A stretch of 64,000 bases of DNA from Schizochytrium sp. TIO01 (taxonomy: Eukaryota; Protista; Bigyra: Labyrinthulomycetes): positions 3,510,747 through 3,574,746 of the forward strand of contig SMSO01000037.1 of NCBI GenBank assembly GCA_004764695.1. The letters are read 5' to 3'. The first letter of the stretch is position 1. Each line of letters begins with the position of its first letter. A program made the position numbers and the translations under genes. This document shows, piece after piece, positions 18,284 to 60,980 of this stretch. The notes beneath the pieces are model-generated. The model did not search any database, had not been told where the DNA came from, and was given only the letters and a program-made list of their open reading frames with translations.

Positions 18284-21200
18284 TTAGGTGCTGCTGCCGC
18301 AAAGGTCACCAGAAAGAGTGTACTGATAAGAAATCGTAAAACCTTGGGCAGAAACACAAGAGGTAGCCAAGTTGCAACCATTGTTGGGTTGCTGATCACA
18401 CTGACGGAAACGAATGCGGTTAGTAAAGAGAACAGGGTATTCGCTGTAGGGAACCGTAATTGATCCATCACATGGAAGTTGCAAGGCAGGCACGAAGAAT
18501 ACCTCCACCCAATCGCTAATTGTTTCGTTGTAGTACTCTACGAAGATTCCTTGTTCACACACATCGGTTGATAATCCATAGTCCGGGTCAGAAGCACAAA
18601 CATTTGAGCTGTCACGTGCGCCAGTGCCATACATCTCGATGTACGTTACAATTCCAAAAGTTTCTTCGTAAATATCGTGAGAACATTGGCTTAGCCAGCG
18701 ATTGAGGGTGTATGTTCCGCGGTTGGAGCTAATTGCAGTACAGTACTGTTCTGTCCAACGCTCTCCGACCTTCTCCATATTCTGGCCCTGGCCCCAAATT
18801 TTGTCAATGCATTTCTTTGTAGAGTTGTCGGCCGTGTTAAAGACATTGGCCGTAAGACACCACTCTTCAATTGCGGAAAGAATCGCACTATCAGACATGA
18901 TTGTTGAAGGGCGCACTAGAGCCTTAGCCAAGGTGAGAGCCTTGCCCCACTTTTGCCAAGTACATTGATAAAAGATTCCGTTAGAGCTGGTATCGGTGAC
19001 AGTAGCGTTCTTAAAGTCGATGACATTTGTAGGACAGAATCCAGTTGCGTCACTTTCCGTAGCGCGAATCTCATCTGTATCAATGATGTGATCAATATTC
19101 AGGCGATAGCCAGTGATTCCAGCAGCAGCACTACCTGTAGCGATCATCTTGACACAAGTCACCTCCATGTAAATCGAAGAATCGTACATGAATGACCAAC
19201 GACGTGTGGAGCCACGACTTGTTGGGTTTTGGTCCACAGAGCTATATGTAATGTTGGTGAAGGCGTTGGAAATATCTCCAGTCCAACCGGATCCGGCACT
19301 TCCAAAGCATTCGCTAGGGTCTAGCGTATAATCATCGCCGTTTACAGTGAAAGTTGCAGAGGTGATGACAGCACGTTCACCAAGTACAGCATTGACAGAG
19401 AAGTCACCGTCGGGTGTAGTATATATTTCCATCGTAGCCGGTCCTGAAACAGGGTTGGATTGGCAAGGGGACCCAATAGCGCCGATGTTTGCTTGCGTGG
19501 TTTGATCAATTAACTCAGCACGGGTTTCGTTGTAATAGCATGGGTTGCCGTCCTGATCGAGCTGCGCCTCACATGCATCTTTTTGAATCGGACATACATT
19601 ATCAAGACCAGTGTTCGCACGTCCATCACAAATGATCCAAACACTCACGTTAAAGTAGTTGGTTGTGAATGAAATCATCTCGGGATCACCATATACGTTG
19701 CAATCTGGGCAGCAAGAGGTGATAACATCTTCAGAGTCATCATAGTCAATAATGATCTCAAGAGTAGCGCTATAATTTTGGAGTTGTTCACAGTCCACAA
19801 CCTCCTGAGAATCGCTAGCATCACAGTATGGCCGGGTGGTTTCCTGAGACCGACAGTAGCCCTCGTCGGTCAACTCTGGTAAAACTTCCTCTTCAAATGG
19901 ACAGCACGTTTCGCACGTGCCGAGTTCCATAATCTCTCCTTCGATCGAGCAAACCTGGGGCTCGCGACCAGCAGAATAGGTGCAGTTATAGCAAGTTTCA
20001 CCCACACTACCAATGGGGGCACCAGTAGTAGGTGCCACGGTAGGCCTATTCCCCTCATCAGTTGGGGCTTGTGTGGGATTGGGAGTTGGCAACATGGTCG
20101 GTACATCGGTAGGTGCTCCAGTTGGTGCTCCAGTGGGAGCTCCAGTTGGTGCTCCAGTGGGAGCTCCAGTTGGTGCTTCAGTTGGTGCTCCAGTTGGTGC
20201 TCCAGTGGGAGCTCCAGTGGGAGCTTCAGTCGGTGCTCCAGTGGGAGCTCCAGTGGGTGCTTCAGTTGGTGCTTCAGTCGGTGCTTCAGTGGGAGCTGCA
20301 GTCGGTGCTTCCGTAGGCGCTTCAGTCGGTGCTTCCGTAGGCGCTTCAGTCGGTGCTTCCGTAGGCGCTTCAGTCGGTGCTTCCGTAGGCGCTTCAGTCG
20401 GTGCTTCCGTAGGCGCTTCAGTGGGAGCTGCAGTCGGTGTTTCAGTGGGAGCTGCAGTCGGTGCTTCAGTAGGAGCTGCAGTCGGTGCTTCCGTAGGTGT
20501 TGCAGTTGGCGCTGCAGTCGGTGAGTCGGTCGGTGCTGCAGTCGGCTCAGGAGTTGGGCAAAAGTCCATGTTATATTCAAAGTTTACGACAAAGCCATTT
20601 GTTGGAAGACATTCGTTCGCAGCGACACATTGAGTCTGGACAGATTCACACTGAATCAACCGGATAGGGCGCACCATAAGATCGGGGTAATCAGAACCAC
20701 TGATATTGAGAACCCCATCGCAAGGGGGGTAGGCAGCGGGGATAAAAAATGCGTCTTCGTACTCCTCCGTATCAGGGTTCAGCGACTGCACTTGGGCACC
20801 TACTTCACACTCGTATGATTTGGTAGTGTTGTACTCTGCAGCATCGGCAATGCATTCTGTTGCAACGTTATTGGAGGACACAAGTGAAAACGAAGGGCGG
20901 TCAGTGACATATTGAAACCAAGAGTAATCTTCAATGTCACCAAGGCATCTCATGTATCCAGCCTCATCATAGCTTGTTTTATCCTCGTTCATGTTATCAA
21001 TTTGGCAAACAATATCTGCCCAGTTGTAGCTGGTTTCTGTGCAGTTTTCGTCATCCATAATGCGTGAAACACAGGCATCAACCGTGTCAATAGCTGGGGT
21101 TACTCCTGTAAGATCGTTGAGAGCGCACCATGAGCGGATGTTGTCGGCCAGATTGTCATCGACGCAAGTAGAGTCAATGAGAGCCTTGCAAGCCTCGATG

Positions 21201-22348
21201 CAACCACCAACCTCTTTTCGGAGGCATCGATCATCTTGAATGATTGACAGGGTGCCCGTGCCTCTAGAATCTTCAGTAATTTCACCAGAACTGCAAAATC
21301 CGCTGCTATCTGTAGCATCGTCGTCGTCACCAGGAGTGGGGACCTTGAGGGAAATGTCAAGACGAGAAAGGTAGTCGGAGGTGGCTTGGCACAGGATTGT
21401 AGTGAATACATTAGCATCGTCGTTTTCGATATTCCAGCGAACACGAGTGTCAGACTCTTGGGTTACAGTCCATGTATCAGGGATGCCAGAAGAGCCGGAT
21501 GAGCTCCATGCAGACGCAGAAACATCGGAAAGGCAGTCTGCCGAGGTCAGTGTATAGATTGTTCCATCAGACTGAGTGACGTCCATCGAGATGATGACTC
21601 CACGTTCTCCAAGTGTCAAGTTGAGGATTTGGCCATTACCATCGTACATCACCATGGTAGGGAACATTGTACCTTCCCAGATTGGAGTAGCTTGGCAAGG
21701 GCTTCCGTTTTGCGTGTGGTCGTACCACCAAGGCTGCGGGTCATCAGTATTAGGCTGACGTGTACGCCTGACAAATTCACATGAGTTTCCCCAGGGATCG
21801 AGCTGATTCCCACATCGCACAGGGCCATGGGTACAGTCACTGGCACGCCGGTCATCACAGATAAGCCATTTGTCCCGTGTTCCATCGAATGCTGTACAGC
21901 GAGGATCGCCCCAGCATACGCAGGTAGAGCAGCAAAGTTCGTCAGAGGAGACGTTTTCGTACGTGAAGGCAAAGTCAAGTTTGAGATATGCGTTTTCCGG
22001 CTCGCAGCCCGTAGCATTTGAGTCACAGTATGCGTTGGTAATCTCAACCATCCGACAGCTGTCATCGCTTTGCAGCACACGGGAGGTATCGGGGGAAGCG
22101 AGCTTGTTATCTTTCACGCCCATAAGCATACGGCGCACATCTGTACTTGCCACAAGATTCGGGCAGCAAGATTCCAGTGTCGCAGGTCCAGCAAGTGACG
22201 AAGACTCGCCTAGGGCGGCGGTGGGGTCCAGACACGCAAAATTGCTCAGCTCTAGCTGCTGCGTAGTGCTTGTGCAACCGATGCTTTGAGCCGAAACTTT
22301 AGCCACGAGGACGGCCAGCACAACAACAGCGCTAGTGGGGGCCTTCAT
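18284..22348 (-). CDS. Paralogue A: secreted Cys-rich two-module (VWD-like GDP) protein with long PTxA linker, 1354 aa
   Basis: Signal peptide MKAPTSAVVVLAVLVAKVSA-Q; CVCWGDPRCTAFDG and CNVYGDPEM motifs; ~188-aa PTEA/PTAA/PTGA repeat linker; no TM or GPI tail; clear homology to four other ORFs in the window. Confidence 0.92.
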   Translation of the reverse strand: MKAPTSAVVVLAVLVAKVSAQSIGCTSTTQQLELSNFACLDPTAALGESSSLAGPATLESCCPNLVASTDVRRMLMGVKDNKLASPDTSRVLQSDDSCRMVEITNAYCDSNATGCEPENAYLKLDFAFTYENVSSDELCCSTCVCWGDPRCTAFDGTRDKWLICDDRRASDCTHGPVRCGNQLDPWGNSCEFVRRTRQPNTDDPQPWWYDHTQNGSPCQATPIWEGTMFPTMVMYDGNGQILNLTLGERGVIISMDVTQSDGTIYTLTSADCLSDVSASAWSSSGSSGIPDTWTVTQESDTRVRWNIENDDANVFTTILCQATSDYLSRLDISLKVPTPGDDDDATDSSGFCSSGEITEDSRGTGTLSIIQDDRCLRKEVGGCIEACKALIDSTCVDDNLADNIRSWCALNDLTGVTPAIDTVDACVSRIMDDENCTETSYNWADIVCQIDNMNEDKTSYDEAGYMRCLGDIEDYSWFQYVTDRPSFSLVSSNNVATECIADAAEYNTTKSYECEVGAQVQSLNPDTEEYEDAFFIPAAYPPCDGVLNISGSDYPDLMVRPIRLIQCESVQTQCVAANECLPTNGFVVNFEYNMDFCPTPEPTAAPTDSPTAAPTATPTEAPTAAPTEAPTAAPTETPTAAPTEAPTEAPTEAPTEAPTEAPTEAPTEAPTEAPTEAPTEAPTAAPTEAPTEAPTEAPTGAPTGAPTEAPTGAPTGAPTGAPTEAPTGAPTGAPTGAPTGAPTGAPTDVPTMLPTPNPTQAPTDEGNRPTVAPTTGAPIGSVGETCYNCTYSAGREPQVCSIEGEIMELGTCETCCPFEEEVLPELTDEGYCRSQETTRPYCDASDSQEVVDCEQLQNYSATLEIIIDYDDSEDVITSCCPDCNVYGDPEMISFTTNYFNVSVWIICDGRANTGLDNVCPIQKDACEAQLDQDGNPCYYNETRAELIDQTTQANIGAIGSPCQSNPVSGPATMEIYTTPDGDFSVNAVLGERAVITSATFTVNGDDYTLDPSECFGSAGSGWTGDISNAFTNITYSSVDQNPTSRGSTRRWSFMYDSSIYMEVTCVKMIATGSAAAGITGYRLNIDHIIDTDEIRATESDATGFCPTNVIDFKNATVTDTSSNGIFYQCTWQKWGKALTLAKALVRPSTIMSDSAILSAIEEWCLTANVFNTADNSTKKCIDKIWGQGQNMEKVGERWTEQYCTAISSNRGTYTLNRWLSQCSHDIYEETFGIVTYIEMYGTGARDSSNVCASDPDYGLSTDVCEQGIFVEYYNETISDWVEVFFVPALQLPCDGSITVPYSEYPVLFTNRIRFRQCDQQPNNGCNLATSCVSAQGFTISYQYTLSGDLCGSST
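19994..20557 (-). repeat. Coding 12-bp-unit tandem repeat (PTxA) of paralogue A
   Basis: 12-bp units, with an exact 24-bp dimer gtaggcgcttcagtcggtgcttcc repeated ~4x at ~20312-20420. Confidence 0.95.
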
Positions 22349-24150: not shown

Positions 24151-24382
<232 letters not shown>

Positions 24383-24560
24383 TTATTTATTGCATTCAAA
24401 TAAATTGAAGATGGATGCACAAAGAAGAACCAAGACAGAAAAGCGGCACGAATATGTTGCGGTATGGGAGGACGTATGTACAAACCTGCCACTCTGCAGG
24501 GAAAGAAGAAGACACTCCAATGAAGTGAGTGTTTGGGGAGACATGCTATGCATTCATTCA

Positions 24561-24815
24561 TTGATACATTCATTGATATTTCATTCATTCATTGATATAT
24601 TCATTGATATTTCATTCATTCATTGATATATTCATTGATATTTCATTCATTTATTGATACATTCATTGATATTTCATTCATTCATTGATATATTCATTGA
24701 TATTTCATTCATTTATTGATACATTCATTGATATTTCATTCATTCATTGATATATTCATTGATATTTCATTCATTTATTGATACATTCATTGATATTTCA
24801 TTCATTCATTGATAC
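24561..24815. repeat. 31-bp minisatellite with 62-bp higher-order periodicity
   Basis: Unit TTGATA[C/T]ATTCATTGATATTTCATTCATT[C/T]A, ~8 copies, with variants alternating. Confidence 0.85.
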
Positions 24816-25761: not shown

Positions 25762-25932
25762 TAAACAAACAAACAAACAAACAAACAAACAAACAAACAA
25801 ACAAACAAACAAACAAACAAACAAACAAACAAACAAACAAACAAACAAACAAACAAACAAACAAACAAACAAACAAACAAACAAACAAACAAACAAACAA
25901 ACAAACAAACAAACAAACAAACAAACAAATAA

Positions 25933-25966
<34 letters not shown>
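25762..25966. repeat. (AAAC)n followed by (TA)n microsatellites
   Basis: Perfect aaac run to ~25929, then a (ta)n run to ~25966. Confidence 0.97.
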
Positions 25967-25970
<4 letters not shown>

Positions 25971-32217: not shown

Positions 32218-35200
32218 TTAAGATGATGAACTACAAATCTCGCCACTGTAAGAATATTGATAGGAGACACTAAAACCTTGTGCAGACATGCAAGAGTATG
32301 CAAGCGAGCAGCCATTGTTTGCCTGCTGGTCACACTGCCGGAAACGAATCTTATTTTGGAAGAGGTTTGGATAGTCGCTGTACGACAGGGAAATAATGCC
32401 ATCGCAAGGAAGCTGAAGAGCCGGCACAAAAAACTCCTCAACCCACTCACCTAGGTCCTCATCATAATATTCAACAAAAATTCCCTGCTCACAAACGCTC
32501 GACGTAGTATTGTAAGACGGATCTGAAGAGCAGGTGTTATCCGTGTCACGCTCACCAGTTCCGTACATCTCAACATAAGTTGTAATACCAAACGTCTCTT
32601 GGTAAATGTCAGAGGTACATTGGCTTAGCCAGCGGTTAAGAGACCATGTTCCTCGGTTAGAGCTAATCGCAGTGCAGTACTGGGTTGTCCAACGCTTGCC
32701 AATGTTTGTCATACTGTTGCCATTGTTCCAAATCTTATCATAGCATGCTGTGGCCGGGTCAGACGCAGTGTTAAAGACGTTTGCAGTAGTACACCACGAC
32801 TCGATTGCTGCACTGATTTCAGCATCACTGCTGATGGTTGCTGCAGACACTAGTGCCTTTGCCAAGGTAAGAGCCATACTCCATTGCTGCCACGTGCAAG
32901 TGTAGAAAACACTGTCGGAGCCTGTCTTGGTGTGGTTAGACTGCATATAGTCAATTTTATCAGTAGGACAAAATCCAGTTGCCAACTCGCTGCCAGAACG
33001 TGTTTCATCGGTATCAATGATGTGATCGAGATCCAAGCGGTATCCAGTAATTCCTTCAGCATCACCACCCTGAGCAATCATTTTAAGACAGGTGATCTGA
33101 ACGTAGATAGACTCTTCAAACATAAAACTCCAGTTGCGAGTGGCACCGCGGGCAGTGGGATTTTGATCATCACTATCGTATGTGACGTTATTAAGAACGC
33201 CAGTAATATTTTGATCCCATCCCGAGCCAGCATCACCGAAACATTGACTTGCTGTAAGTGTGTAGTTGGTGCCATTCACGGTGAAGATCGCAGCGTTGAT
33301 GACAGCACGTTCGCCGAGGATTGTGTTAATGGCGAAGTCCCCACTAGGAGTTGTGTAAACCTCCATAACAGCCGGATTTGAATCCGGGTTTGCTTGGCAA
33401 GGAGATCCAATCGCACCAATGTTAGCCTGAGAACTTCCAGAGATAAGATCTGCTCGGGTTTGATTGTAGTAGCAAGCGTTTCCATCCTGGTCAACCTCTG
33501 AGGTACAGGTATCCTCTTCAATTGGACAGGTAGTGTCATCGTCTGTTTTAGTGCGTCCATCACAGATAATCCAAGCGGTAATGTTGAACGTAGTTGTCTG
33601 GAAAGAGATCATTTCAGGATCACCGTATACGCTGCAGTCGGAACAGCATGAGTTGGGCATCTCTTCTGCACTAGCATAGGTAATGTTGATGTCAAGTGTA
33701 CCTTCGTTATCAGCTAGGGAACTGCAGAGAGCACTCTCTGAGGAAGAGCTCATGTTGCAGTAGGGGCGAGTGGTTTCTTGGCTACGGCAATATCCATACT
33801 CGGTGAGCTCAGGCAAGGAGCTAGACTCGTCTTGACAGCATGTTTCACATTCACCAAGTTCCATATAAACATTGTCCGTGGAGCAAATTTGAGGAGCCGT
33901 ACCCTGGCTTACAAGGCAATCGTAGCATGAACTTTCAATCGTAGTCGATGGGCTTTCCGTGCCTGTAGAATCTGCGTTACTAGTCGAAGGGGCACCTGTT
34001 CCTTCTCCTGAAGGTTCAGGTGCTGCCGAAGGAGCTAATACTGGGCCAGCGGGAGCGGGAGTGGGTGCTTCCGTGGGAGCAGAGGTCGGTGCTTCAGTGG
34101 GAGCAGAGGTTGGTGCTTCGGTGGGGGCAGAGGTTGGTGCTTCGGTGGGGGCAGAGGTTGGTGCTTCGGTGGGGGCAGAGGTCGGTGTCTCAGTGGGAGC
34201 AGAGGTCGGTGTCTCAGTGGGAGCAGAGGTCGGTGTCTCAGTAGGAGCAGAGGTCGGTGTCTCAGTAGGGGTTTGGGTTGGAGATTCAGTAGGAAGCATT
34301 GTAGGAGTCAGGGTTGGCTGCGGCGTGGGGCAGAATTGCATGTTGTAATTGAAAGAAACCTCAAACCCATTTGTGGGCAAGCACGAATTAACGGTAGCAC
34401 ATTGAGCTTGGATGGACTCACATTGCACAAGACGGATAGGCCTGGTTACAATATTGGGATAATCCGCACCACTGATGTTAAGCAAGTCATTGCAAGGTGG
34501 ATAGTCAGCAGGAATAAAAAATTCATCCTCCCAAGACTCTGCGTCTGAGTTGTATGACTGTACTTGAACACCAACAGCGCAGTCGTAAGATTTAGAGGTA
34601 TTGTACTCTGCTGCGTTGGAGATGCATTCTGTCGGGGCAGTATCGGATGAGACAATAGTATAGGAGGGTCGGTCAAGAACATATTGGAACCAGGTGAAGT
34701 CTTCAATCTCTTGCAAACACTTTTGGTAGCCGCTCTCGTCATAGCTGGTTTTGGCAGAGTTTAGGTTGTCGACTTGACAAACGATATCTGCCCAGTTATA
34801 ACTAGTTTCCGTGCAGTTCTCTTCATCAATGATACGTGAAACACACTCTTCAGTTGTGTTGATGGCAGGGGAAACTCCAGAGAGATCATTCATTTCACAC
34901 CAGTAGCGAACGTTACTCTCGAGGTTGCTTTCGAGACATGTAGCATCAACCAGGGCTTTGCATGCCTCTACACAACCACCTAGCTCACTACGAAGGCAAA
35001 TGTCATCTTGCTCAATCGAAAGCGTTCCTGTTCCTTTTGAATCCTCGGAAATGGAACCAGTGCTGCAAAAGCCGTCACCGTTTGCAGGAGTAGATGCATC
35101 ACCAGCAGTCGGAACCTTGAGAGTTATATCAAGGCGAGACCGATAATCAGAAGTCGCCTGACACATGATACTAGTATACACAGTTGCATCATCATTTTGA

Positions 35201-36132
35201 ATGGTCCAATGTACACGAGTGTCAGACTCAACAACTACGGACCACGTATCAGGAATACTGGACGAGTCAGTTGAGGTCCATGCATCGGAAGTGGTATCTG
35301 AGAGACAGTTCGCAGAAGTCAAACTGTAGCTAGCACCTGTGGACTGGGTGACAGTCATAGAGGAAATGATACCACGCTCACCAAGTGTGAGATTGATAGA
35401 TTGATCGTCACCATCATACATGATCATTGATGGAAACTTAGAGCCTTCCCAAATCGAGGTCGACTGGCACGGGCTGCCGCTTTGGTCCCAGTCATACCAC
35501 CATGGTTCATCATCATCGCTGTCGGGCACACGCGTGTTTCTGACGTATTCACATTTGTTGCCCCAAGGGTCCTTTTGCTTCTTGCAACGAACAGGGCCGT
35601 GTAAGCAGTTACTTGCCCGACGATCATCACAAATGATCCAGTTATCACGAGATCCATCGAAAGCTGTACAGCGAGGATCACCCCAGCAAACACAAGTCGA
35701 GCAGCAGAGCTCTTCTGATGTCACAGTTTCGTACGAAAAAGAGAACTCGAGTTCAAGGTTGGCCTCAGAAGCGCTGCAGCCAGTGCTAGTGCTGTTACAA
35801 TAAGCATTGGACACCTCGACTATGCGGCATGTATCTGCGGATTGCAGACTGCGACCTCCTAAAAGGAGCGCTCTTGAGTCTTCAACACCAAAAAGACGAC
35901 GAGAGTCAGTTGTTGCAACCAGATTGGGACAGCAAGTTTCCACGGTTACAGGACCAATTGATGCAGCAGAAGCAGAGAGGACAGCTCCCGTGTCTTGACA
36001 TGCAAACGTGCTGAGTTCTAATTGTTGAGAAGAAGCAGTGCAGCCATCGCTTTGTCCCGATGCTTGAGTAGCGATAGCAACGAGAACGAGGGCTACAGAA
36101 GCAAAAATGTGCTGTTGCACAATAGGATTCAT
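32218..36132 (-). CDS. Paralogue B: secreted Cys-rich two-module protein, ~1304 aa
   Basis: ATG at 36132 (MNPIVQQHIFASVALVLVAIATQASG-Q); same Cys and GDP motifs as A; ~134-aa PTET/PTSA/PTEA linker. Confidence 0.92.
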   Translation of the reverse strand: MNPIVQQHIFASVALVLVAIATQASGQSDGCTASSQQLELSTFACQDTGAVLSASAASIGPVTVETCCPNLVATTDSRRLFGVEDSRALLLGGRSLQSADTCRIVEVSNAYCNSTSTGCSASEANLELEFSFSYETVTSEELCCSTCVCWGDPRCTAFDGSRDNWIICDDRRASNCLHGPVRCKKQKDPWGNKCEYVRNTRVPDSDDDEPWWYDWDQSGSPCQSTSIWEGSKFPSMIMYDGDDQSINLTLGERGIISSMTVTQSTGASYSLTSANCLSDTTSDAWTSTDSSSIPDTWSVVVESDTRVHWTIQNDDATVYTSIMCQATSDYRSRLDITLKVPTAGDASTPANGDGFCSTGSISEDSKGTGTLSIEQDDICLRSELGGCVEACKALVDATCLESNLESNVRYWCEMNDLSGVSPAINTTEECVSRIIDEENCTETSYNWADIVCQVDNLNSAKTSYDESGYQKCLQEIEDFTWFQYVLDRPSYTIVSSDTAPTECISNAAEYNTSKSYDCAVGVQVQSYNSDAESWEDEFFIPADYPPCNDLLNISGADYPNIVTRPIRLVQCESIQAQCATVNSCLPTNGFEVSFNYNMQFCPTPQPTLTPTMLPTESPTQTPTETPTSAPTETPTSAPTETPTSAPTETPTSAPTEAPTSAPTEAPTSAPTEAPTSAPTEAPTSAPTEAPTPAPAGPVLAPSAAPEPSGEGTGAPSTSNADSTGTESPSTTIESSCYDCLVSQGTAPQICSTDNVYMELGECETCCQDESSSLPELTEYGYCRSQETTRPYCNMSSSSESALCSSLADNEGTLDINITYASAEEMPNSCCSDCSVYGDPEMISFQTTTFNITAWIICDGRTKTDDDTTCPIEEDTCTSEVDQDGNACYYNQTRADLISGSSQANIGAIGSPCQANPDSNPAVMEVYTTPSGDFAINTILGERAVINAAIFTVNGTNYTLTASQCFGDAGSGWDQNITGVLNNVTYDSDDQNPTARGATRNWSFMFEESIYVQITCLKMIAQGGDAEGITGYRLDLDHIIDTDETRSGSELATGFCPTDKIDYMQSNHTKTGSDSVFYTCTWQQWSMALTLAKALVSAATISSDAEISAAIESWCTTANVFNTASDPATACYDKIWNNGNSMTNIGKRWTTQYCTAISSNRGTWSLNRWLSQCTSDIYQETFGITTYVEMYGTGERDTDNTCSSDPSYNTTSSVCEQGIFVEYYDEDLGEWVEEFFVPALQLPCDGIISLSYSDYPNLFQNKIRFRQCDQQANNGCSLAYSCMSAQGFSVSYQYSYSGEICSSSS

Positions 36133-40442: not shown

Positions 40443-43400
40443 TTATGAGCTTGTGCCACAAATGTCTCCTGTGTGGCTAAACTTGTATGACACCTCAAAG
40501 CCTTGAGCGGACATACAAGAATATGCAAGGGAACAGCCGTTGTTGGCTTGCTGATCACATTGACGAAAACGGATCTTGTTCTGAAAAAGGTTCGGGTAAT
40601 CAGAATACGAAAGTGAGATGAGACCATTGCAAGGAAGGCTGAGAGATGGTACGAAGAATTCCTCCACCCAAGAGCCTGAGGTTTTATCGTAGTACTCCAC
40701 AAAAATGCCCTCTGTACAAATATTATCTGAAGTAGTGTACGATGGATCACTCATGCATGTGTTATCGGTATCTACCTCACCCGTACCATACATTGCCACG
40801 TAGGTAGTTATACCAAACGTTTCCTGGTATATATCCGAAGTACATTGGCTGTTCCAGCGCTTTAGAGTCCAAGTTCCACGTTTGGAGCTAATTGCAGTGC
40901 AATATTGCTCTGTCCAGCGCTCGCCAACCTTCACCATGCTCGTACCAGAGCCCCAAATTTTACTAAAACAGGCTGCGGAAGCATCGTTAGATGTAGTAAA
41001 GACATTTGCAGTCTTGCACCAAGTCTGTACGGCACTTTTAATTTCAGCAGTACTGTCGATCGTCGCCGGGGCAACAAGGGCCTTGGCAAGAGTGAGAGCC
41101 ATACTCCATTGCTGCCAAGTGCAGTCGTAAAAAACACTGTCTGCGCCCACTTTTGTTGGTGTTGCCTGCTGGAAATTAATCACATCAGTGGGGCAGAAAC
41201 CAGTCGCATTAGACGTATCCCCAGTTGCACGGTTCTCGTCCACATCAATGATATGGTCTAAATCCAATCGATACCCAGTTATGCCTTCTGCATCACCACC
41301 CTGCGCAATCATTTTCAAGCACGTAATTTCTACATAGATAGTCTCATCATACACGAAAGACCAGCTACGTGTAGCTCCACGAACGGTTGGATTTTGATCC
41401 TCATTATCAAAGGTTACGTTTTGAAGGACGTTAACTATGGAAGCATCCCAGCCAGACCCAGCACCACCAAAACAATCGCTAGCGGTCAATGTGTAATTAT
41501 TTCCTCCTACAGTAAATACAGCAGCATTGACTACCGCACGTTCACCAAGGATAGTATTAATAGCAAAATCGCCACCAGGAATAGTGTAAACCTCCATCAC
41601 TGCGGGCCCTGACGCAGGATTTGCCTGGCACGGGGAACCGATAGCACCAATGTTCGCCTGAGAGCTGGAGGAAATCAATTCAGCTCGAGTCTTGTTATAG
41701 TAACAAGCATTGCCATTGTGGTCTACCTCTGAGATGCAGGTGTCCTCTTCTATGGGACAAGCTTCATCGTCTTCAGTCTGAACTCGTCCATCGCAAATGA
41801 TCCATGCACTTATATTGAAAGACGTTGTTTTGAAGGAAATAAGCTCTGGATCACCATAAACACTGCAGTCAGGACAGCACGAGAGTGGAACATCCTCCGC
41901 ACTAGCGTATGTGATGTTGATTTCCAAGGTTCCCTCATGGTTATCCAACTGTTCGCACCATTGTGCTTGATTTGAGTCCGTCATGTTGCAGTACGCGCGT
42001 TCAGTCTCCTGCGTTCGGCAGTACCCGTATTCTGTTAGTTCAGGCAATGTAGTTGCATCAGACTGACAACAAGTCTCACATTGACCAAGATACATGTAGA
42101 CATCATCAGTTGTACAAATTTCAGGTTGACGACCGGATCCAACACTACATTCATAGCAAGACGAGGCTTCTTCGGTTGTTACTGGAGAGCCAGTTCGAGG
42201 ATAATCACTCTCTGGTGTTGGAGTCAACGTGGGTGTGCTAGTTGGCGCTGCTGAAGGTACTTTCGTAGGAGCAAGAGTAGGTGCGTCTGTAGGAACCAAC
42301 GTTGGAGAACTTGTTGGGGTCAGAGTAGGGCTTTGTGTGGGCTTAGAAGTAGGGCAGAATTTCATAGTGTACTCAAACGAAACTTCGAAACCATTTGTTG
42401 GCAAGCACGAATTCTCAATGGCGCACTGAGATTGCAAAGATTCGCACTGTACTAAGCGAATAGGCCTTGTCATTATGTTTGGAAAATCGGCTCCACTAAT
42501 ATTGAGAACGTCATCACACGGTGGAGAGTCAACAGGAATAAAAAACTCATCATCATAATCACCTGTCTCAGGGTTTAGAGACTGCACTTGAACACCTACA
42601 GCGCAATCATATGGCTTGCTTTTGCTATATTCTGTAACATCAGAGATACACTCAGTTGGCGCAGAACCAGAAGAAACAACTGAATACGATGGCCGGTCTT
42701 GCACGTACTGAAACCATGTAAAATCTTCAATATCAGCTAGACATTGCAAATACCCGCTTTCATCATAGCCAGACTTGTCTGAATTCATGTTATCAATTTG
42801 GCATACAATATCAGCCCAGTTGTAACTCGTCTCAGTACAATTTTCTTCATCAATAATTCGAGAAACACAATCTTCAGTAGAGTTAATCGCAGGCAAGACA
42901 CCTGCGTAATCATTCATGTCACACCAGTACCTAACGTGTGTCTCGAGATTAGATTCCAGGCACGTGGCATCCACTAGAGCCTTACATGCTTCAATGCAGC
43001 CTCCGAGTTCTTCGCGAAGGCACTCATCGTCTTGCTCAACAGACAAAGTTCCTGTGCCCTTGGCATCTTCCGAAATTGTACCAGTGTTACAGAATCCGTC
43101 CCCAGAACTAGAAAGAGGGGCGTCACCTGCGGTGGGGACCTTGATATTGACATCAAGCCGCGAGCGATAATCTGACGTTGCTTGACATAGAATGCTTGTA
43201 AATGCAGATGCATCATCATTTTGAATGCTCCAACGGGTGCGGGAATCTGACTCAACAGTAACAGTCCAAGTGCTTGGAATGCTTGATGAGCTGGAAGAAG
43301 TCCATGCAGAGGCAGAACTGTCAGCTAGGCAGTCAGTAGATGTAATTGCAAAGGTTTCGCCACTCGTTTGAGTCACATTTAAAGCAGACACAATTCCGCG

Positions 43401-44146
43401 CTCCCCAAGTGTCAAGGTGATAACTTGATCGCTTCCTTCATACATAATCATTGTAGGAAATTTTGTGCCTTCCCAAATTGAGGTGGATTGACATGGGCTG
43501 CCGCTTTGATCCCAGCTGTACCACCATGGTTTGTCGTCTTCACTGTTAGGTACACGCGTATTCCGGACATACTCACATTTGTTCCCCCAAGGATCTTTCT
43601 GATTCTCACAGCGAACTGGACCATGGAGACAGTTGCTTGCACGGCGATCATCACAAATGATCCAGTTAGCACGCGAGCCATCAAAAGATGTGCACCGCGG
43701 GTCGCCCCAGCATACACATGCTGAGCAACACAGCTCTTCAGAAGCGACGGCCTCGTACGCGAACGAGAAATCAAGTTTGAGAACAGCATCATCTGGATTG
43801 CATCCTGTACTAGATTCGTCACAATAAGCATCAGAAATTTGCACAGTACGACAAAGATCGCTGGACTGCAATTTTCGGGCTTCCGACATTGACAATTTGC
43901 TAATGTTCATAAGCGAGTCAAGCAGACGGCGGGAGTCCGAGCCTGCATTGATGTTTGGGCAGCATGTTTCACAGATGCAGGCCCGACTGTGGAGGTGGAA
44001 GCGCTCAAGGGTTCATTTTCTTCAGAACATGCGAAGCTTTCTAGTGTGAGCTGCGTTGAAGAAAGCGTGCAACCATCACTTTGGGCGGCTGACCTTGAAG
44101 CGATTGCTAATAACAGCACTGCTGCGATTGCAGCAGTGGCTTTCAT
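40443..44146 (-). CDS. Paralogue C: secreted Cys-rich two-module protein, split by a 1-nt deletion near 43970 (assembly error or pseudogene)
   Basis: ORF 43907..44146 supplies the signal peptide up to ...VGPAS. Restoring one G (GTGAA to GTGGAA) gives VETCCPNINAGSDSRRLLDSL, in frame with ORF 40443..43910 and matching VETCCPN in B. Confidence 0.85.
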
Positions 44147-51830: not shown

Positions 51831-54800
51831 TTAGCTGGAGCCACTTTCATCTTCACAAATACTTTCATCTTGGCTGAACCTATACATAATCGAAAACCCT
51901 TGGGCTGATTTACACGAGTATGCAAGAGAACAACCGTTGTTTGCAGGTTGATCGCATTGTCGAAAACGAATCATGTTTGTGAAAAGATTAGGGTGCTCGG
52001 TGTAGGTCACAGCGATAGTTCCATTGCATGGTAGGTTTAGCGCAGGAACAAAAAACTCTTCAGTCCAGTCTGATATCTCTGCATCAAAATACTCTACGAA
52101 AATACCTTCTTGACAAACATTGCTTGAGAGCTTATATGATGGATTTGAAGAACAAGTGTTGTCAGTGTCTTTTGCACCAGTTCCATAAGTCTCAACAAAA
52201 TTTACGATGCCAAAAGTTTCTTCCTTGATCTGACTGGTACATCGATTGCGCCACTGAGAAACAGAAATATCACCACGGTTGTTGCTTATTGCGTTGCAGT
52301 ATTGAACTGTCCAGCGAAAACCAATAGACTCGCTGTCCGCATTGGTCCCAGTAATTGCGGAGTAGCACTCAACTTCGGGGTTGGAGCTTGTTTGAAAAAC
52401 GTTAGCAGTTTCGCACCAGGTTTGGATAGCCTCATTTATCTGCGAAGCAGTGGTAGCAGTAGATACAAGAGCTTTAGCAAGAGTTAGAGCTTGACTCCAC
52501 TGTTGCCATGTACAAACATTGAAGACACTACCTTTCGAGGTATCGGTGACACTTGCATTCATATAATCAATAGCACTGGTGGGACAGAAACCCGTAGCAT
52601 TGTCAGATCCGGAACGTTCAAGATCGGAATCGATGATATGATCAATGTTCATGCGATAGCCAGTGATATCTTGTGCATCACCGCCCTGTGCTACCATTTT
52701 AATACATGTTATCTGTACATAGATGGTATTGTCGTAAACAAACGACCATGTTCGTTCTGCCCCACGTGGTGTGCTACGTACATCAGAGGCATCATACGTT
52801 ACATCTGTGAAGAAAGAGCTAGGGTCATTCGTCCAGCCCGAGCCAGCCTCACCAAAGCACTCTGAAGAGACTAGTGTAATATACTCCCCTGCAATAACAA
52901 AACGACTTTCGGTAATGACGGCACGTTCACCGAGTAAAATGAAAAACGAAAAGTCCCCATCAGGAATAGTATATAACTCCATGGTAGCTTCTCCAGAGTT
53001 GGGATTTGCCTGGCACGGTGATCCGACCGCCCCAATATTGGACTGATCTGTGAGAAGAGCCGCGCGGGTAGTGTTGTAGTAGCATCGATTTCCATCTTGA
53101 TCCAGCTCTTTGGTGCATTGTTCCTCTTCGATTGGGCAAGCATCGTCAGAGTCCTGAATGACGCGACCATCACAAATAATCCAAGCTGAGATATTCAAAG
53201 ATAATGTTGTGTCCGCAAATGAGGTCATTTCCGGATCGCCATATACAGCACAATCTCGACAGCAGGTTGTTGGAGCATCTTCAGCATCTGAATATTGAAT
53301 CTGTATTTCTAGTAAGCCACCACCTGTTTTCCAGCTGAGCACAGTATGCAGCTTCTTCGTTATTGCTCATGTTGCAGTATGGACGTGATGTTTCCTGGTA
53401 TCTGCAATAACCGTTCTCATTCAATACAGGCAATGTTTCATTCTCTGCTGGGACACAGCATGTCTCACAACTTCCAAGCTCATAGAATTGGTTTTCAGTG
53501 GCGCATATTTCGGGCCGTTGAGATCGAGGTTGCTGCAAGCATTCATAGCATCCACCTTCGGTGCCAATCGGTGATTCTGTAGGGCTCGGGGTTGGTGGAG
53601 GGCAATATTCCATGGAATAGGTAGCTTTGACTTGGAATCCATTCGTTGGGAGGCAAGAGTTTTCCATTGCACACTCACTTTGAATTGATTCGCACTGCTC
53701 AAATCTAATTGGGCGTGTCATAAGATTGGGAAAGTCTACCCCACTAATATTAAGAAAATTATCACATGGGGGTAGTCCACGGGGATGAAAAACTCGTCTT
53801 CCCAAACACTGGTGAGGTTATTGAATGATTGTACTTGAACCCCTACAGCACACATATAAGGCTTGCTTCTATTATACTCTTGTACGTCAGCGATGCATTC
53901 CGCCGGTATCACATCTAGAGAAGGAATACTATAAGCAGGGCGATCGGCGACATACTGAAACCACGTGTTATCTGCAATGTTAGTGAGACACATCTGGTAT
54001 CCCGACTCGCTGTAGCCTGTTTTATCAGCATTCATATTGTCAATCTGACAAATGATATCTGCCCATTGAAAGCTGGTTTCATTACAGTTCTCCTCAGAGA
54101 AGATGCGCGAAACGCATTCACCTATGGAGTTAATTGCGGGAGTGACACCAGTGAAATCATTAAATGTACACCAGACATTTACGTTTTCTTCAAGATTTGC
54201 ATCCTCGCAAGAGGCATCCACAAGTGCTTTGCAAGCTTCGATGCAGCTACCTAGTTCCCTGCGTAGACACAGGTCATCTTGTGTAATATTCAGAGTGCCC
54301 GTTCCTTTCGAATTCTCTTGGATGTTTCCAGTGATACAAAACCCCTCGCCGGAAAGGTTCCCGGCTCCTCCATTCGGGATTTTAAGATCGACATCTAGTC
54401 GCGTGCGATAGTCAGATGTTGCTAGACATAGAATTGAAGTAGACGTAGTTCCATCTAGGTTTTGAATATTCCAACGGATTCGAGTAGACGATTCCAATAC
54501 AACTGCCCATTTGTCAGGAATGTTTGAAAAATCCGAAGATATCCAGGCCGATGCAGAGAAGTCAGACAAACAGGTTGCAGATGAGAGAGTATAATTGACA
54601 CCATTTTGAACAATAGTCACACCTGTGATTATGCCGCGTTCACCAAGTGTTAAAGTGGTAACCTGCCCATACCCATCATACATTACCATCGTTGGGAGAT
54701 CAGTGCCCTCCCAAATTGACTTAGACTGACAGGGACTGCCACTCTCATCCCAATTGTACCACCAGGGTTGCGTGGCATTACTGTCAGGTACTCGAGTTCT

Positions 54801-55379
54801 ACGTACGTACTCACATTGATTTCCCCATGGATCTTTCTGATTGTGGCATCTCACAGGACCGTGCTGGCAGTCACCAGCGCGTCGGTCGTCACAAATAACC
54901 CAATTATCACGGGAGCCGTCGAATGCAGTGCAACGAGGATCTCCCCAGCAGACACAAGATGAACAGCATAAATCGTCAGAGGTCAGGCGTTCATATAGAA
55001 AGTTGAACTCCAGTTCAAGGTTTGCGTACTGTACCTCACAGCCAGAATCTTGACCGACGTCACAATATGCATTCGTAATCTCTGTGATTCGGCACGTTTC
55101 AGCTGACTGTAGTGTGCGAAATGAGGTTTCATGGTTGTTTGAACCCCAGAGCAAGCGCCAGCTTTCACCTGCCGCAACATTAGGACAGCAGGTCTCAAAT
55201 ATAACAGGGCCAACTGCACTTGAAGATGGAAGTGTCGATCCAAGTCCATTTTCGCATGCGAGGTAATCTAGCGTAAGCTGGTTTGTTGTTGCGTTACAGC
55301 CTTCGACTTGTGCTTGCACAGTCATGACCTGAAGCGCAATGGACAATACTACAAATCCTATCACAACCATTGTTGACAT
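51831..55379 (-). CDS. Paralogue D: secreted Cys-rich two-module protein, split by two 1-nt indels (assembly errors or pseudogene)
   Basis: ORFs 53736..55379, 53281..53805 and 51831..53342 are consecutive pieces colinear with E. G5 at 53768-53772 needs G6 to give DYPPCDN, and T4 at 53327-53330 needs T3 to give QLETGGGLL (ELETSNGLL in E). Confidence 0.85.
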
Positions 55380-57425: not shown

Positions 57426-60400
57426 TTAGCTTGAGCCACCGCTGCCAGAGCAGACACTTGAATCTTGGCTATATTTGTAAGAGACAGAGTAGCCCTGGGC
57501 AGACTGGCAGGAGAATGCCAAGGAGCATCCATTGTTGGCTTGCTGATCACACTGGCGGAAACGAATGTTATTGGTGAAAAGGTTCGGGTGATCGCTGTAG
57601 GAAGCAGAAACAACTCCGCTGCATGGCATGTTCAGAGCAGGAATAAAGAATTCTTCAACCCATTCGGAAGTGTCATCGTCATAATACTCGACAAAAATAC
57701 CCTGCTCACAAACATTGTCAGAGACGGAGTACGTGGGGTTAGAAGAGCAGGTGTTGTCAGTATCCATAGCACCAGTACCGTAGGTCTCAACGTAGTTCAC
57801 AATGCCGAAGGTCTCCTCCTCAATCTGGCTTGTACAGCGGTTTCGCCACTGAGTAGCAGTCAAATCGCCACGGTTGCTGTTAATAGCATTGCAGTATTGG
57901 ATAGCCCAGCGGGAACCAATCTTAGAGTAATCACTGGATTTACCAACGATCGTTGAGTAACATTCAGAGGCAGGGTCACTGTATGTCTGGAAAACATTGG
58001 CAGTATCACACCAAGTCTGAACTGCTTCCTTGATCTGAGCGGTCGTTGAAGCAGTGGACACGAGGGCCTTGGCAAGAGTCAATGCTTGACTCCATTGCTG
58101 CCATGTGCAAACATTGAACACACTTCCATCAGATGTATCGGTAACAGTTGCGTTCATGTAATCGACAACATCGGTAGGGCAGTAACCAGTAGCACTAGAG
58201 TCTTCAGTTCTGTCAAGATCAGTGTCAATGATGTGGTCAATGTTCATGCGGTATCCAGTAATACCCTGAGCATCACCGCCCTGAGCGATCATCTTGATGC
58301 AAGTAATCTGAACATAAATACTTTCGTCATAAAGAAAAGACCAAGTACGCTCAGCACCGCGAGTAGTACTGCGAACGTCCTCGCTATCGTATGTCACATT
58401 AGTGAAGACAGAGGTCGGGTCGGATGTCCAGCCAGAACCGGCATCATTGAAGCAATCGGAAGAGACCAAAGTATAGACGTCACCAGAGACAGTGAAACGA
58501 GCTTCTGTAACAACGGCGCGCTCACCGAGAAGAATGTTGATAGAAAAGTCACCACTGGGAATAGTGTAAAGCTCCATAGTGGCATCGCCAGAGGCCGGGT
58601 TGGCCTGGCAAGGAGAGCCGATAGCGCCGATGTTAGATTGGTCGGTAAGAAGGTTGGCACGAGTGGTGTTGTAGTAGCAAGCGTTTCCGTCATGATCAAG
58701 TTCCTGGGTGCACTGGTCTTCTTCGATTGGGCAAGCATCGCCGTTGGTCTTAATGGTACGTCCATCGCAAATGATCCAAGCAGAAATGTTGAGAGTAAGG
58801 GACGTATCAGCAAAAGAAGTCATTTCAGGATCACCATAAACAGCGCAGTCCTTGCAGCAGTTGGTAGGAGTTTCTTCAGCATCGAAGTAGTCAATCTGGA
58901 TTTCAAGCAGACCATTGCTTGTTTCAAGCTCGTTGCAGTAAGCAGCCTCCTCACTGTTACTCATGTTACAGTATGGGCGGGTAGTTTCCTGGGAACGACA
59001 GTATCCATACTCAGTAAGAGGAGGAGTAGTCTCCTCACTTGCAGCCTCGCAGCAGGTATCACAGGTGCCGAGCTCTTGGTAGGTACTTTCAGTAACACAG
59101 ATCTGGGGCTGCTGAGATTCAGTCGATTCAACGCATTCGTAGCAAGTCTCACCACGGATAATAACAGTCGGGCTAGGGGTGGGGGTCAAGGTCACATCAG
59201 GGCAAAATTCCATCGTGTAAGTGGCCTCCACCTCGAAGCCATTAGTGGGCAAACAAGAGTTCTCGACTGCACATTGGGCCTGAATAGACTCACACTGGAT
59301 GAAGCGAATCGGGCGGGTCATGAGATCCGGATAATCAGAGCCACTGATGTTAAGCAGATCATTGCAGGGAGGGTATTCAACCGGAATGAAAAACTCGTCA
59401 ACCCAAGAATCAGAAGAAGAATCATAGGACTGAACCTGAACACCCACAGCGCAGTCTGAGGACTTGGTGGTGTTATACTCAGTCACGTCAGAAATGCACT
59501 CTGTTGGTGCACTGTCGGAGGAAACAACAGTGTATGTGGGACGATCCATGACGTACTGAAACCAAGTGTTGTCCTCAATGTCACCGAGACACTTCTGATA
59601 GCCTGACTCATCATAGCTAGTCTTATCAGAGTTCATGTTGTCAATTTGACAAACAATATCAGCCCAGTTGTAAGCAGTCTCATTGCAGTTCTCCTCCATC
59701 ACGATGCGAGACACACATTCCTCGGTAGAGTTGATGGTAGGAGTAACACCAGTGTAGTCATTCATCTGGCACCAGTAGCGGACATTCTCCTCAAGGTTTT
59801 CCTCAAGGCAGGTAGTATCAACGAGGGCTTTGCACGCCTCAACGCAACTGCCAACCTCGCTGCGGAGACACATGTCATCCTGAGAAATAGAAAGAGTACC
59901 AGTACCCTTTGAGTCTTCAGAAATGGAGCCTGTGGCACAGAATCCTTCGCTGTCAGGGTTGGTAGAGTCGCCTGCAGTAGGAATCTGAAGATTAATGTCG
60001 AGACGGCTGCGGTAATCTGAGGTGGCCTGGCAAAGAATGGTAGTGTAGACAGTGGCAGCATCGTTCTGGATGTTCCAGCGCACTCGAGTGTCTGACTCAA
60101 CAGTTACTGTCCATGTGTCAGGGATGCTGGATGAATCAGAGGAAGTCCATGAAGACGCACTGCTCTTCGAAAGGCAGTCTTCTGAAGTGAGAGTGTAGAT
60201 AGCACCAGAAGCCTCGGTTACAGCAACAGAGGCAATGATACCACGTTCACCAAGGGTAAGATTGAGAACCTGGTCCTGACCATCGTACATAACCATTGTA
60301 GGGAACATAGTGCCTTCCCAAATAGCAGTGGACTGACAAGGACTGCCGCTCTGCTCCCAGCTGTACCACCAGGGTTGGGCATCATCGCTATCAGGTACAC

Positions 60401-60980
60401 GGGTCCGACGAACATACTCACAACGGTTACCCCAGGGATCACGGTGCTTATGGCAGCGAGTAGGACCATGTTGACAGTTGCTTGCGCGGCGGTCATCACA
60501 GATAATCCAGTTGTCGCGGGAACCGTCAAAAGCAGTACAGCGAGGATCACCCCAGCAGTCACACTTGGCACAGCAGAGCTCATCAGAGGTAACTGTTTCG
60601 TATGAAAAGGTGAAGGCAAGTTCTAAGTTGGCATTTTCGGCTTCGCATCCAGAATCACTGTCAAGATCACAGTAGGCATTTGTGGTTTCCACGATACGGC
60701 AAGTATCAGCAGACTGAAGTGAGCGTCCTCCAGATAAGGCCTTGGAGTTGAGACCGAGAAGACGGCGAGCTTCGGTGTCGGCTACAAGATTAGGGCAGCA
60801 AGAATCTACTGAAGCAGGGCCCACAACTGATGCCTCAGCTGCAGATGCGACTGTAGAATCGGAGCATGCCTGGGATTCAAGAGTGAGTGCAGTGGTCGAG
60901 CTAACACAACCACTGCTCTGGGCGTTTGCCGAGGCCACAGAGGCCAAGAGCAAAACAACCACAGAAGACACGAGATTCAT
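57426..60980 (-). CDS. Paralogue E: secreted Cys-rich two-module protein with minimal linker, 1184 aa
   Basis: Signal peptide MNLVSSVVVLLLASVASANA-Q; CDCWGDPRCTAFDG and CAVYGDPEM motifs; 19-aa PT linker; intact ORF. Confidence 0.93.
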   Translation of the reverse strand: MNLVSSVVVLLLASVASANAQSSGCVSSTTALTLESQACSDSTVASAAEASVVGPASVDSCCPNLVADTEARRLLGLNSKALSGGRSLQSADTCRIVETTNAYCDLDSDSGCEAENANLELAFTFSYETVTSDELCCAKCDCWGDPRCTAFDGSRDNWIICDDRRASNCQHGPTRCHKHRDPWGNRCEYVRRTRVPDSDDAQPWWYSWEQSGSPCQSTAIWEGTMFPTMVMYDGQDQVLNLTLGERGIIASVAVTEASGAIYTLTSEDCLSKSSASSWTSSDSSSIPDTWTVTVESDTRVRWNIQNDAATVYTTILCQATSDYRSRLDINLQIPTAGDSTNPDSEGFCATGSISEDSKGTGTLSISQDDMCLRSEVGSCVEACKALVDTTCLEENLEENVRYWCQMNDYTGVTPTINSTEECVSRIVMEENCNETAYNWADIVCQIDNMNSDKTSYDESGYQKCLGDIEDNTWFQYVMDRPTYTVVSSDSAPTECISDVTEYNTTKSSDCAVGVQVQSYDSSSDSWVDEFFIPVEYPPCNDLLNISGSDYPDLMTRPIRFIQCESIQAQCAVENSCLPTNGFEVEATYTMEFCPDVTLTPTPSPTVIIRGETCYECVESTESQQPQICVTESTYQELGTCDTCCEAASEETTPPLTEYGYCRSQETTRPYCNMSNSEEAAYCNELETSNGLLEIQIDYFDAEETPTNCCKDCAVYGDPEMTSFADTSLTLNISAWIICDGRTIKTNGDACPIEEDQCTQELDHDGNACYYNTTRANLLTDQSNIGAIGSPCQANPASGDATMELYTIPSGDFSINILLGERAVVTEARFTVSGDVYTLVSSDCFNDAGSGWTSDPTSVFTNVTYDSEDVRSTTRGAERTWSFLYDESIYVQITCIKMIAQGGDAQGITGYRMNIDHIIDTDLDRTEDSSATGYCPTDVVDYMNATVTDTSDGSVFNVCTWQQWSQALTLAKALVSTASTTAQIKEAVQTWCDTANVFQTYSDPASECYSTIVGKSSDYSKIGSRWAIQYCNAINSNRGDLTATQWRNRCTSQIEEETFGIVNYVETYGTGAMDTDNTCSSNPTYSVSDNVCEQGIFVEYYDDDTSEWVEEFFIPALNMPCSGVVSASYSDHPNLFTNNIRFRQCDQQANNGCSLAFSCQSAQGYSVSYKYSQDSSVCSGSGGSS

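Follow-up and report, generated by a model that had tools for sequence, protein, structure and literature searches.

Thraustochytrids are enclosed by walls of Golgi-made scales that consist of sulfated polysaccharide (PMC11642839), and they secrete a glycoprotein mucus (PMC3775781). Essentially no protein has been identified as a component of the walls, scales, mucus or ectoplasmic-net matrix of labyrinthulomycetes (PMC11642839, PMC12221091). In another stramenopile group, the diatoms, the adhesives include tandemly expanded proteins that are rich in Pro, Thr and Ser (PTS) and bear VWD domains (PMC7335047; bioRxiv 10.1101/2023.03.06.531300). Here we describe a tandem array of genes for large, presumably secreted proteins, genes A to E, in a window of 64,000 nucleotides from Schizochytrium sp. 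TIO01 (C36:3510747-3574746). Each protein carries two homologous modules, and the modelled module contains a VWD fold that is well supported by structural comparison. By analogy with the described VWD proteins, we consider it probable that the genes encode secreted, acidic, disulfide-rich glycoproteins that serve as building blocks of wall scales, of mucus or ectoplasmic-net matrix, or of an adhesive. What is new is the module architecture built on a VWD basis, in a lineage without known matrix proteins; a secreted Cys-rich VWD family is in itself no great surprise.

The list of open reading frames (ORFs) and their translations place all five genes on the minus strand, at intervals of 9.9, 4.3, 7.7 and 2.0 kb (Table 1), and the ORFs were found at the positions and spacings given in the preliminary description of this DNA. 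That description spoke of a five-gene array. Five genes do lie in the window, but the array comprises six, since gene F, a sixth intact copy of 1389 aa with the longest linker, is located 2.8 kb past the window end (L031:2787-6956). The paralogues A to E can be aligned end to end at 57-76% amino acid identity in pairwise comparison, and a full-length alignment at this level puts their likeness far beyond chance; the identity of their DNA is merely ~62-77%. Since introns are absent from the genes, a spliced gene model is unnecessary. A plus-strand ORF of 457 aa (58086-59459) was rejected as a gene, as it lies antisense to gene E.

The translated genes start with an N-terminal signal-like hydrophobic peptide, continue with a conserved Cys scaffold and end in a short C-x-G/S-rich C-terminus, with the chain stopping 3-8 residues past the last Cys of the second module. 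Each of the six full-length sequences contains exactly 68 Cys; in A, B and E, module 1 accounts for 36 of them and the remainder of the protein for 32. The composition is strongly acidic (pI ~4.05; 14-15% Asp and Glu, 4-5% Lys and Arg), with 20-24% Ser and Thr, and each copy has 10-17 NxS/T sequons. No long hydrophobic run that fits a transmembrane (TM) segment or a glycosylphosphatidylinositol (GPI) signal was found in the window proteins. The signal peptide, the Cys scaffold, the acidic Ser/Thr/Asp/Glu-rich make-up and the absence of TM or GPI signals had all been noted before and are seen in the translations. We also considered a GPI- or TM-anchored surface protein as a candidate, and ruled it out on the C-terminus, which is not hydrophobic.

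Both modules measure ~570 aa, and their homology is apparent within a single protein: modules 1 and 2 of gene E share 28% identity (E 6e-37). They are connected by a Pro/Thr-rich linker whose length varies widely among the copies, from 16 aa in D and 18 aa in E to 64 aa in C, 133 aa in B, 187 aa in A and 222 aa in F. Pfam searches of the window proteins and 18-19 relatives recognised the PT repeat only, in addition to an Ice_binding domain in one remote match.

To describe the fold, we rely on an AlphaFold2 model of module 1 of gene E, which was built from a 62-sequence alignment (pLDDT 83.5, pTM 0.78). From the N- to the C-terminus, the model consists of N-terminal strands, a disordered loop (residues 46-69), a beta-rich domain (~113-335), a six-helix Cys-rich domain (344-458) and C-terminal strands (463-569). 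When the model was searched with Foldseek, all 18 matches at E ≤ 1e-3 were D assemblies of MUC2, MUC5AC, MUC5B, VWF or FCGBP, together with Cypridina luciferase. Rescoring with VIA-align ranked VWD structures in all of the best 28 entries (Z 9.4-13.9; 147 residues aligned at an rmsd of 2.6 Å for the top entry), and the next entry scored Z 6.2. A search of 48,161 chains that was independent of Foldseek gave the same picture, since its top 19 matches are all of VWD fold (Z 9.3-13.4) and the scores then fall to ~6-7.5. The VWD domain of honey-bee vitellogenin (Z 10.2), the Tettigonia pigment protein (Z 10.1) and RGMB (Z 10.1) are among the matches of this search. The best VWD matches superpose with an rmsd of 2.6-2.8 over 144-148 residues. 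Because the independent search agrees and the Z values drop sharply after the VWD proteins, the presence of a VWD fold in the predicted structure of the module is well supported. The VWD lead had originally been read from the CxxxGDP...FDG motif, and the confident model bears it out, though without a sequence match in Pfam or the PDB. Foldseek against viral structures returned nothing.

The loop at module residues 46-69 (~60711-60782; 22070-22135 in gene A) is the sole long segment of the model with pLDDT below 50. It lies between the N-terminal strands and coincides with a variable peptide bracketed by RxL.

At the start of the VWD domain stands the motif CCxxCxCxGDPxCxxFxG, in which G, D, P and F are invariant in all 62 modules, at a mean column identity of 23%. 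The residue that follows GDP is variable: it is Arg in module 1 and Glu in module 2 of the array, and R, L, E, F and others occur across the two-module genes. It is His in 9 of the 22 single-module relatives, and also in the remote relatives P0105, P0110, P0114 and P0116. Structural alignments of the model with RGMB (7ndg_F and 7ne0_D, from residue 169) and FCGBP (8qci_B, from residue 4081) begin at Pro125 of the model, the Pro of GDP. We take these RGMB and FCGBP chains to be fragments released by autocleavage between Asp and Pro of GDPH. Since the alignments to both start at Pro125, the invariant G-D-P of the modelled module appears to sit at a position structurally equivalent to the GDPH autocleavage site.

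The 115-aa Cys-rich helical domain that follows the VWD domain has no known fold match in the PDB. The C-terminal half of the module modelled alone reached a pLDDT of 81.7; Foldseek returned nothing for it at E ≤ 1e-3, and its highest VIA Z against the 48,161 chains was 4.1. For the outer strands, at least 12 CUB domains aligned over their whole length (Z 5.8-7.5, which is middling for this tool; rmsd 2.7-3.6; ~100-113 residues). These matches span model residues ~1-571, that is, they combine the first ~110 and the last ~110 residues of the module. The model therefore suggests that the N- and C-terminal strands build a CUB-like beta-sandwich, which would hold the VWD and helical domains as an insertion. 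We treat this arrangement as a lead only, since the Z values are middling. The whole module aligned weakly (Z 5.8-6.4) with the CUB and thioester domain (TED) region of C5, A2M and CD109, and Pfam CUB had no match in the window proteins.

The family extends far beyond the array, with members arrayed on four or more contigs. When the genome that holds the window (64 Mb in 37 contigs) was searched in six frames, 43 matches were obtained, which come from at least 30 further genes. Other tandem arrays are found at C4:216-234 kb, C32:1.79-1.89 Mb (about ten genes), C32:2.24-2.26 Mb and C32:199-226 kb, and single members are located on C13, C31, C35 and elsewhere on C36. In a maximum-likelihood tree of 62 modules, obtained by a quick search, one clade unites all first modules (SH-aLRT 98) and a second clade all second modules (99). 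The two clades have mirrored internal topologies, and single-module proteins fall outside both. The internal duplication is therefore older than the expansion of the family. The six C36 genes form one clade, and its sister is the C4 array. Among the six copies, dN is 0.17-0.39 and dS is saturated, with dN/dS of 0.09-0.12 where it could be computed. The copies are old duplicates under purifying selection, their age following from the saturated dS. The preliminary description had called the system locally expanded; local expansion is indeed present, but the array is one of several in a family of at least 30 genes, and its duplicates are old. A recent segmental duplication was considered as the origin of the array and is ruled out by the saturated dS and the 62-77% DNA identity.

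Outside this genome, a word-indexed protein search found eight full-length relatives only. Gene E is identical to a complete transcript ORF of MMETSP, with an exact match also at JGI; the further relatives are close alleles, a 'hypothetical protein' of Hondaea fermentalgiana (54% identity) and others at 42-46%. Through the exact MMETSP transcript, gene E is the only copy whose transcription is demonstrated. In six runs guessed to be RNA, 51-65% of sampled words of the D-E stretch were present, which is a lead only, 65% of this stretch being coding. HMMER against 1.84 billion cluster representatives returned 113 proteins at E ≤ 1e-3, 41 of them at E ≤ 1e-30, including many single-module proteins of 500-650 aa. 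Where the sources of close relatives are named, they are thraustochytrid (Hondaea, MMETSP), and the rest are anonymous; all named database relatives are labelled 'hypothetical protein'. The Hondaea homologue and the MMETSP transcripts agree with the labyrinthulomycete origin that had been proposed from the letters of this DNA. Neither a characterised full-length relative nor a full-length match to a known enzyme family arose in these searches.

The weak tail of the HMMER search contains a hypothetical protein of Batrachochytrium salamandrivorans and metagenomic proteins with a literal CxCxGDPHC. One of these remote matches, P0114, combines CxCxGDPHC with an Ice_binding/CAA-type domain (PF11999, E 3.7e-47). 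Two others, P0116 (426 aa; NCBI/Logan/ENA) and P0105 (KAH9260806.1 of B. salamandrivorans), are 'mini' relatives whose VWD-like domain contains a literal GDPH. In P0116, as judged by eye, the VWD-like part is joined directly to a C-terminal stretch that resembles the C-terminal beta part of the module, and the helical domain is absent. Because of this make-up of P0116 and P0105, there are hints that the helical domain may be a later insertion and that the family may extend beyond stramenopiles. A search for homologous proteins with the whole-module profile A1 gave a single paralogue-like match, and one with residues 310-532 of P0114 recovered P0114 alone, with no link to named diatom proteins. 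ESM Atlas returned only VWD-bearing clusters, with low scores of 0.78-0.85 (0.81-0.84 for diatom VWD clusters), which are leads and not evidence.

Taken as a whole, the predicted protein resembles a dumbbell, in which two globular modules of ~570 aa would be held apart by a variable Pro/Thr-rich linker of 16-222 aa that is presumably O-glycosylated and extended. The proteins would pass through the endoplasmic reticulum and the Golgi, form ~34 disulfides and gain N-glycans as well as O-glycans on the Pro/Thr rod. After export, the dumbbells may self-associate via their VWD-containing heads, by analogy with mucins, VWF and FCGBP. The Asp-Pro bond of the invariant Gly-Asp-Pro may autocleave, in which case the flanking disulfides would hold the fragments together. 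In this way, the proteins would contribute to the protein fraction of the wall scales, of the mucus or of the net matrix, or would take part in adhesion. We infer secretion, glycosylation, assembly, cleavage and the structural or adhesive role; the extracellular role is proposed because of the analogy with mucins, VWF, FCGBP and the diatom VWD/GDPH adhesives, together with the biology of thraustochytrids. A homodimer prediction for residues 75-573 of E module 1 scored 0.00, with the partner's own fold uncertain, and speaks neither for nor against self-association. Our literature search found no paper linking von Willebrand domains to thraustochytrid proteins. In the settlement proteome of Aurantiochytrium limacinum, such proteins are not named among the candidates, and the terms of its supplement could not be mapped to the window genes.

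Several observations weigh against a matrix or adhesive role. At E ≤ 1, Pfam PF00094 matched none of the five window proteins, 18 relatives and remote GDPH-bearing matches, and PDB profile searches with the whole module (A1) and with a VWD-focused profile (A3) gave 0 matches at E ≤ 10. The Cys count per module is even (36 and 32), so that there is no obvious free Cys for intermolecular bonds. In the window proteins, Pfam C8, TIL, VWC and CTCK found no match, and the CG[LI]C motif is absent from A, B, E and F. Since mucin-type polymerisation motifs are missing and the Cys counts are even, a simple mucin-like disulfide polymer is disfavoured. Autocleavage is also uncertain, because the His of GDPH is replaced by Arg (module 1) or Glu (module 2) in the window genes. 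Moreover, VWD folds occur in non-matrix proteins as well, such as Cypridina luciferase, lipid and pigment carriers, and RGM ligands.

These non-matrix proteins raise other explanations. The large size and divergence of the family, with many paralogues at 25-75% identity, would suit recognition molecules, namely RGM-like ligands, zoospore or gamete factors, self/non-self factors, or binders of prey, bacteria or viruses, among which the paralogues would represent specificities and not bulk material. The VWD-like domain of RGMB (Z 10.1) aligns from the Pro of GDP, and in Seminavis, VWD/GDPH genes react to bacteria as well as to sex pheromone (PMC7335047, PMC8027222). However, strong purifying selection and saturated dS describe old conserved paralogues and no arms race, a membrane anchor is absent, and nothing ties the proteins to a receptor; we therefore regard a recognition function as unlikely. 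Quite unlikely, too, are soluble secreted carriers or binders of a hydrophobic or small ligand (lipid, carotenoid or sterol), or enzymes on a VWD scaffold. The scores of luciferase (Z 11.1-13.0), vitellogenin (10.2) and the Tettigonia pigment protein (10.1) do fall in the range of the mucin-like matches, the layout with two VWD domains superficially resembles that of Cypridina luciferase, and thraustochytrids are rich in lipids and carotenoids. Nevertheless, sequence similarity to vitellogenin, the pigment protein or luciferase is absent, Pfam detects no lipid-transfer N-terminal domains, and there is no nameable catalytic motif. Mucin-like Pro/Thr linkers of up to 222 aa, and a tandem family with 30 genes or more, are more in keeping with structural or adhesive proteins.

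The state of genes C and D in the assembly bears on whether the array is functional at all, since the three frame disruptions across these copies could mean that they are pseudogenes and that the family is disappearing from the lineage. In gene C, the signal peptide and the first 58 residues, read from the ATG at 44146, do not share the frame of the main ORF, and gene D changes frame twice (Table 1). Gene D also has the longest terminal branches in the trees of both modules, with lengths of 0.24-0.35 where most copies have 0.07-0.19. Other public assemblies, however, carry intact alleles. P0133 (1234 aa, Logan) is an intact gene C, in which 58 of 58 residues equal the upstream frame of C and the reading is continuous, and P0002 (1179 aa, Logan) is an intact gene D that matches the three D pieces at 97.6%, 95.5% and 100% (499/499). 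All three disruptions are of a single base and lie in short runs (A3, C5, GG), as errors of a long-read consensus would give. In the 62-module alignment, C and D keep every family-invariant residue, including every invariant Cys and motif, and A, B, E and F are intact. A decaying array is thus highly improbable. Because one-base differences in short runs coincide with intact alleles elsewhere, the most economical reading is that the interruptions of C and D are consensus errors or strain polymorphism.

Within the preferred structural or adhesive role, a more specific arrangement can be envisaged, which we regard as speculative and rather unlikely in its details. The dumbbells would be the protein component of Golgi-assembled scales or of the net or mucus matrix. 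In place of the metazoan D assembly they would use an arrangement not described before, a CUB-like shell that holds the VWD domain and a new Cys-rich helical domain. The Asp-Pro bond would be cleaved at the low pH of the late secretory pathway, the reactive Asp at the new C-terminus would link the protein covalently with sulfated galactan or with adjacent proteins, and the length of the Pro/Thr rod would set the spacing. If this were true, the GDPH domain that is called 'diatom-specific' would be a module for cross-linking outside the cell that is ancient in stramenopiles, or older still.

Table 1. Positions of the array genes, of the parts of gene E and of the frame changes in genes C and D (numbering of the window).
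Feature	Position	Strand	Remarks
Gene A	18284..22348	-	1354 aa, intact; signal peptide, module 1, 187-aa PT(E/A)A linker, module 2
Gene A Pro/Thr-rich linker	19994..20554	-	12-nt tandem repeats; Pfam PT repeat E 1.2e-22
Gene B	32218..36132	-	ORF 32218-36168, true ATG 36132; 1304 aa, intact; 133-aa PT linker
Gene C	40443..44146	-	main ORF 40443-43910 (1155 aa) without the N-terminus; ATG 44146 in another frame
Gene C frame-shift site	43967..43969	-	A-run; the intact allele P0133 has one base more
Gene D	51831..55379	-	three frames: 53736-55379, 53281-53805, 51831-53342
Gene D first frame change	53768..53772	-	C-run, one base shorter than in the intact allele P0002
Gene D second frame change	53326..53332	-	GGAAAAC, one extra G (~53331-53332) relative to the intact allele; original frame restored
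Gene E	57426..60980	-	1184 aa, intact; equals the MMETSP transcript ORF (P0001)
Gene E signal peptide MNLVSSVVVLLLASVASANAQ	60918..60980	-	recognised by reading the sequence
Gene E module 1	59199..60917	-	573 aa; sequence used for the model (pLDDT 83.5, pTM 0.78)
VWD-fold domain, E module 1 (predicted)	59913..60581	-	module residues ~113-335
Invariant G-D-P, E module 1	60543..60551	-	module residues 123-125, inside CCxxCxCxGDPxCxxFDG
Cys-rich helical domain, E module 1 (predicted)	59544..59888	-	module residues 344-458; without a PDB structural match
Gene E inter-module linker	59145..59198	-	short, 18 aa
Gene E module 2	57429..59168	-	580 aa; G-D-P of module 2 at 58827-58835

The DNA between the array genes is AT-rich and rich in microsatellites, and no convincing ORFs were found at 22.4-32.2 kb. 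In this 9.9-kb spacer between A and B, microsatellites at 24076-24860 and ~25700-26010 (an 8-nt unit present more than 40 times, a 31-nt unit, ACAA-type repeats and (TA)n) generate spurious ORFs of 170-236 aa. The same spacer holds a lone, complete 5S rRNA gene (29906-30024, plus strand; Rfam RF00001, 63 bits, E 6.3e-11), and a tRNA scan of window positions 1-56600 found none. A dispersed repeat of ~332 bp is present ~1 kb downstream of B and of D (30872-31206 and 50707-51040, 89% mutual identity), with a partial copy at 28997-29072. Genome-wide, a first look gave 273 candidates, and the 40 that were scored are 84-90% identical and spread over many contigs; the repeat looks like an element of SINE or MITE type. 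Two ORFs of E3 ligase type lie beyond gene A. An intronless ORF of 2227 aa (11152-17835, plus strand) adjoins gene A and encodes a UBR1/PRT6-type N-recognin E3 ligase, with zf-UBR (E 2.5e-19), the UBR1 winged-helix and PRT6_C (E 6.4e-24) domains. An ORF of 420 aa (1007-2269, minus strand) combines a CHY zinc finger with RING and zinc-ribbon_6 domains, as E3 ligases of Pirh2/RCHY1 type do.

For studies of thraustochytrid walls and matrix, a conserved family of at least 30 genes offers concrete candidates that can be tagged in the genetically tractable A. limacinum. With this family, the VWD/GDP(H) extracellular module, known from animal mucins and, under the label of a 'diatom-specific' domain, from the adhesives of diatoms, is also extended to heterotrophic stramenopiles, in a guise that escapes sequence profiles. 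Its new domain arrangement bears on the independent origins of polymeric extracellular matrices in eukaryotes, and on annotation.

In comparison with known systems, the inserted arrangement suggested for the module has its counterpart in complement C3/C4/C5, alpha-2-macroglobulin and CD109, in which a CUB domain also holds an inserted domain (middling Z). The insert of these proteins is a thioester domain, whereas that of the window module would be the VWD domain with a helical bundle, without a thioester motif or sequence similarity. Cypridina (Vargula) luciferase is likewise secreted and Cys-rich and has two VWD domains (Z 11.1-13.0), but it is an ostracod enzyme of ~550 aa that lacks the helical and CUB-like parts, the linker and any sequence similarity to the window family. 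The repulsive guidance molecules (RGMA, RGMB and RGMC) have a VWD-like domain that matches at Z 10.1. The structural alignment starts at the Pro of GDP, which corresponds to residue 169, where the deposited C-terminal fragment of RGMB begins. The RGMs, however, are small GPI-anchored signalling ligands of animals with a single partial VWD domain, and have no Pro/Thr linker, no duplication and no sequence similarity to the window family.

The mucins MUC2, MUC5AC and MUC5B, together with VWF and FCGBP, have the VWD beta-sandwich in common with the modelled module (Z 12-13.9, rmsd 2.6-2.8, ~145 residues aligned). They also share with the window family the Cys-rich start and the G-D-P...F-D-G at the first strands of the domain, and the window family, like them, is presumably secreted and disulfide-rich and contains mucin-like Pro/Thr/Ser stretches. 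In mucins and VWF, the VWD domain is followed by C8-TIL-E; the window family has the 115-aa Cys-rich helical domain instead. The window family further differs from mucins and VWF in that it lacks CGLC, a cystine-knot or VWC dimerisation domain and a long central mucin domain, in that the His of GDPH is not conserved, and in that its VWD domain apparently lies inside the CUB-like sandwich.

The diatom GDPH adhesives are the remaining system. Raphe gliding belongs to diatoms and not to thraustochytrids, Pfam vWD detects many of the diatom GDPH proteins (PMC7335047) but not the window family, and neither a dumbbell of two modules nor a helical domain or CUB-like shell is described for diatom GDPH proteins. 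On the other hand, the diatom adhesives have a signal peptide and PTS-rich, presumably glycosylated regions, as does the window family. The GDPH trail proteins of diatoms (Amphora coffeaeformis Ac629; Lachnit et al. 2019, as cited in PMC7335047 and bioRxiv 10.1101/2023.03.06.531300) come from a stramenopile and are secreted, modular and rich in PTS, as the window family is or, for secretion, is predicted to be. As described there, both groups also share a G-D-P(-H) in a VWD-related domain and the tandem expansion, and the pairing of GDPH with Ice_binding in P0114 is a combination described there for diatom trail proteins. In its working, the window family may come closest to the diatom GDPH adhesives, to which it is perhaps related.

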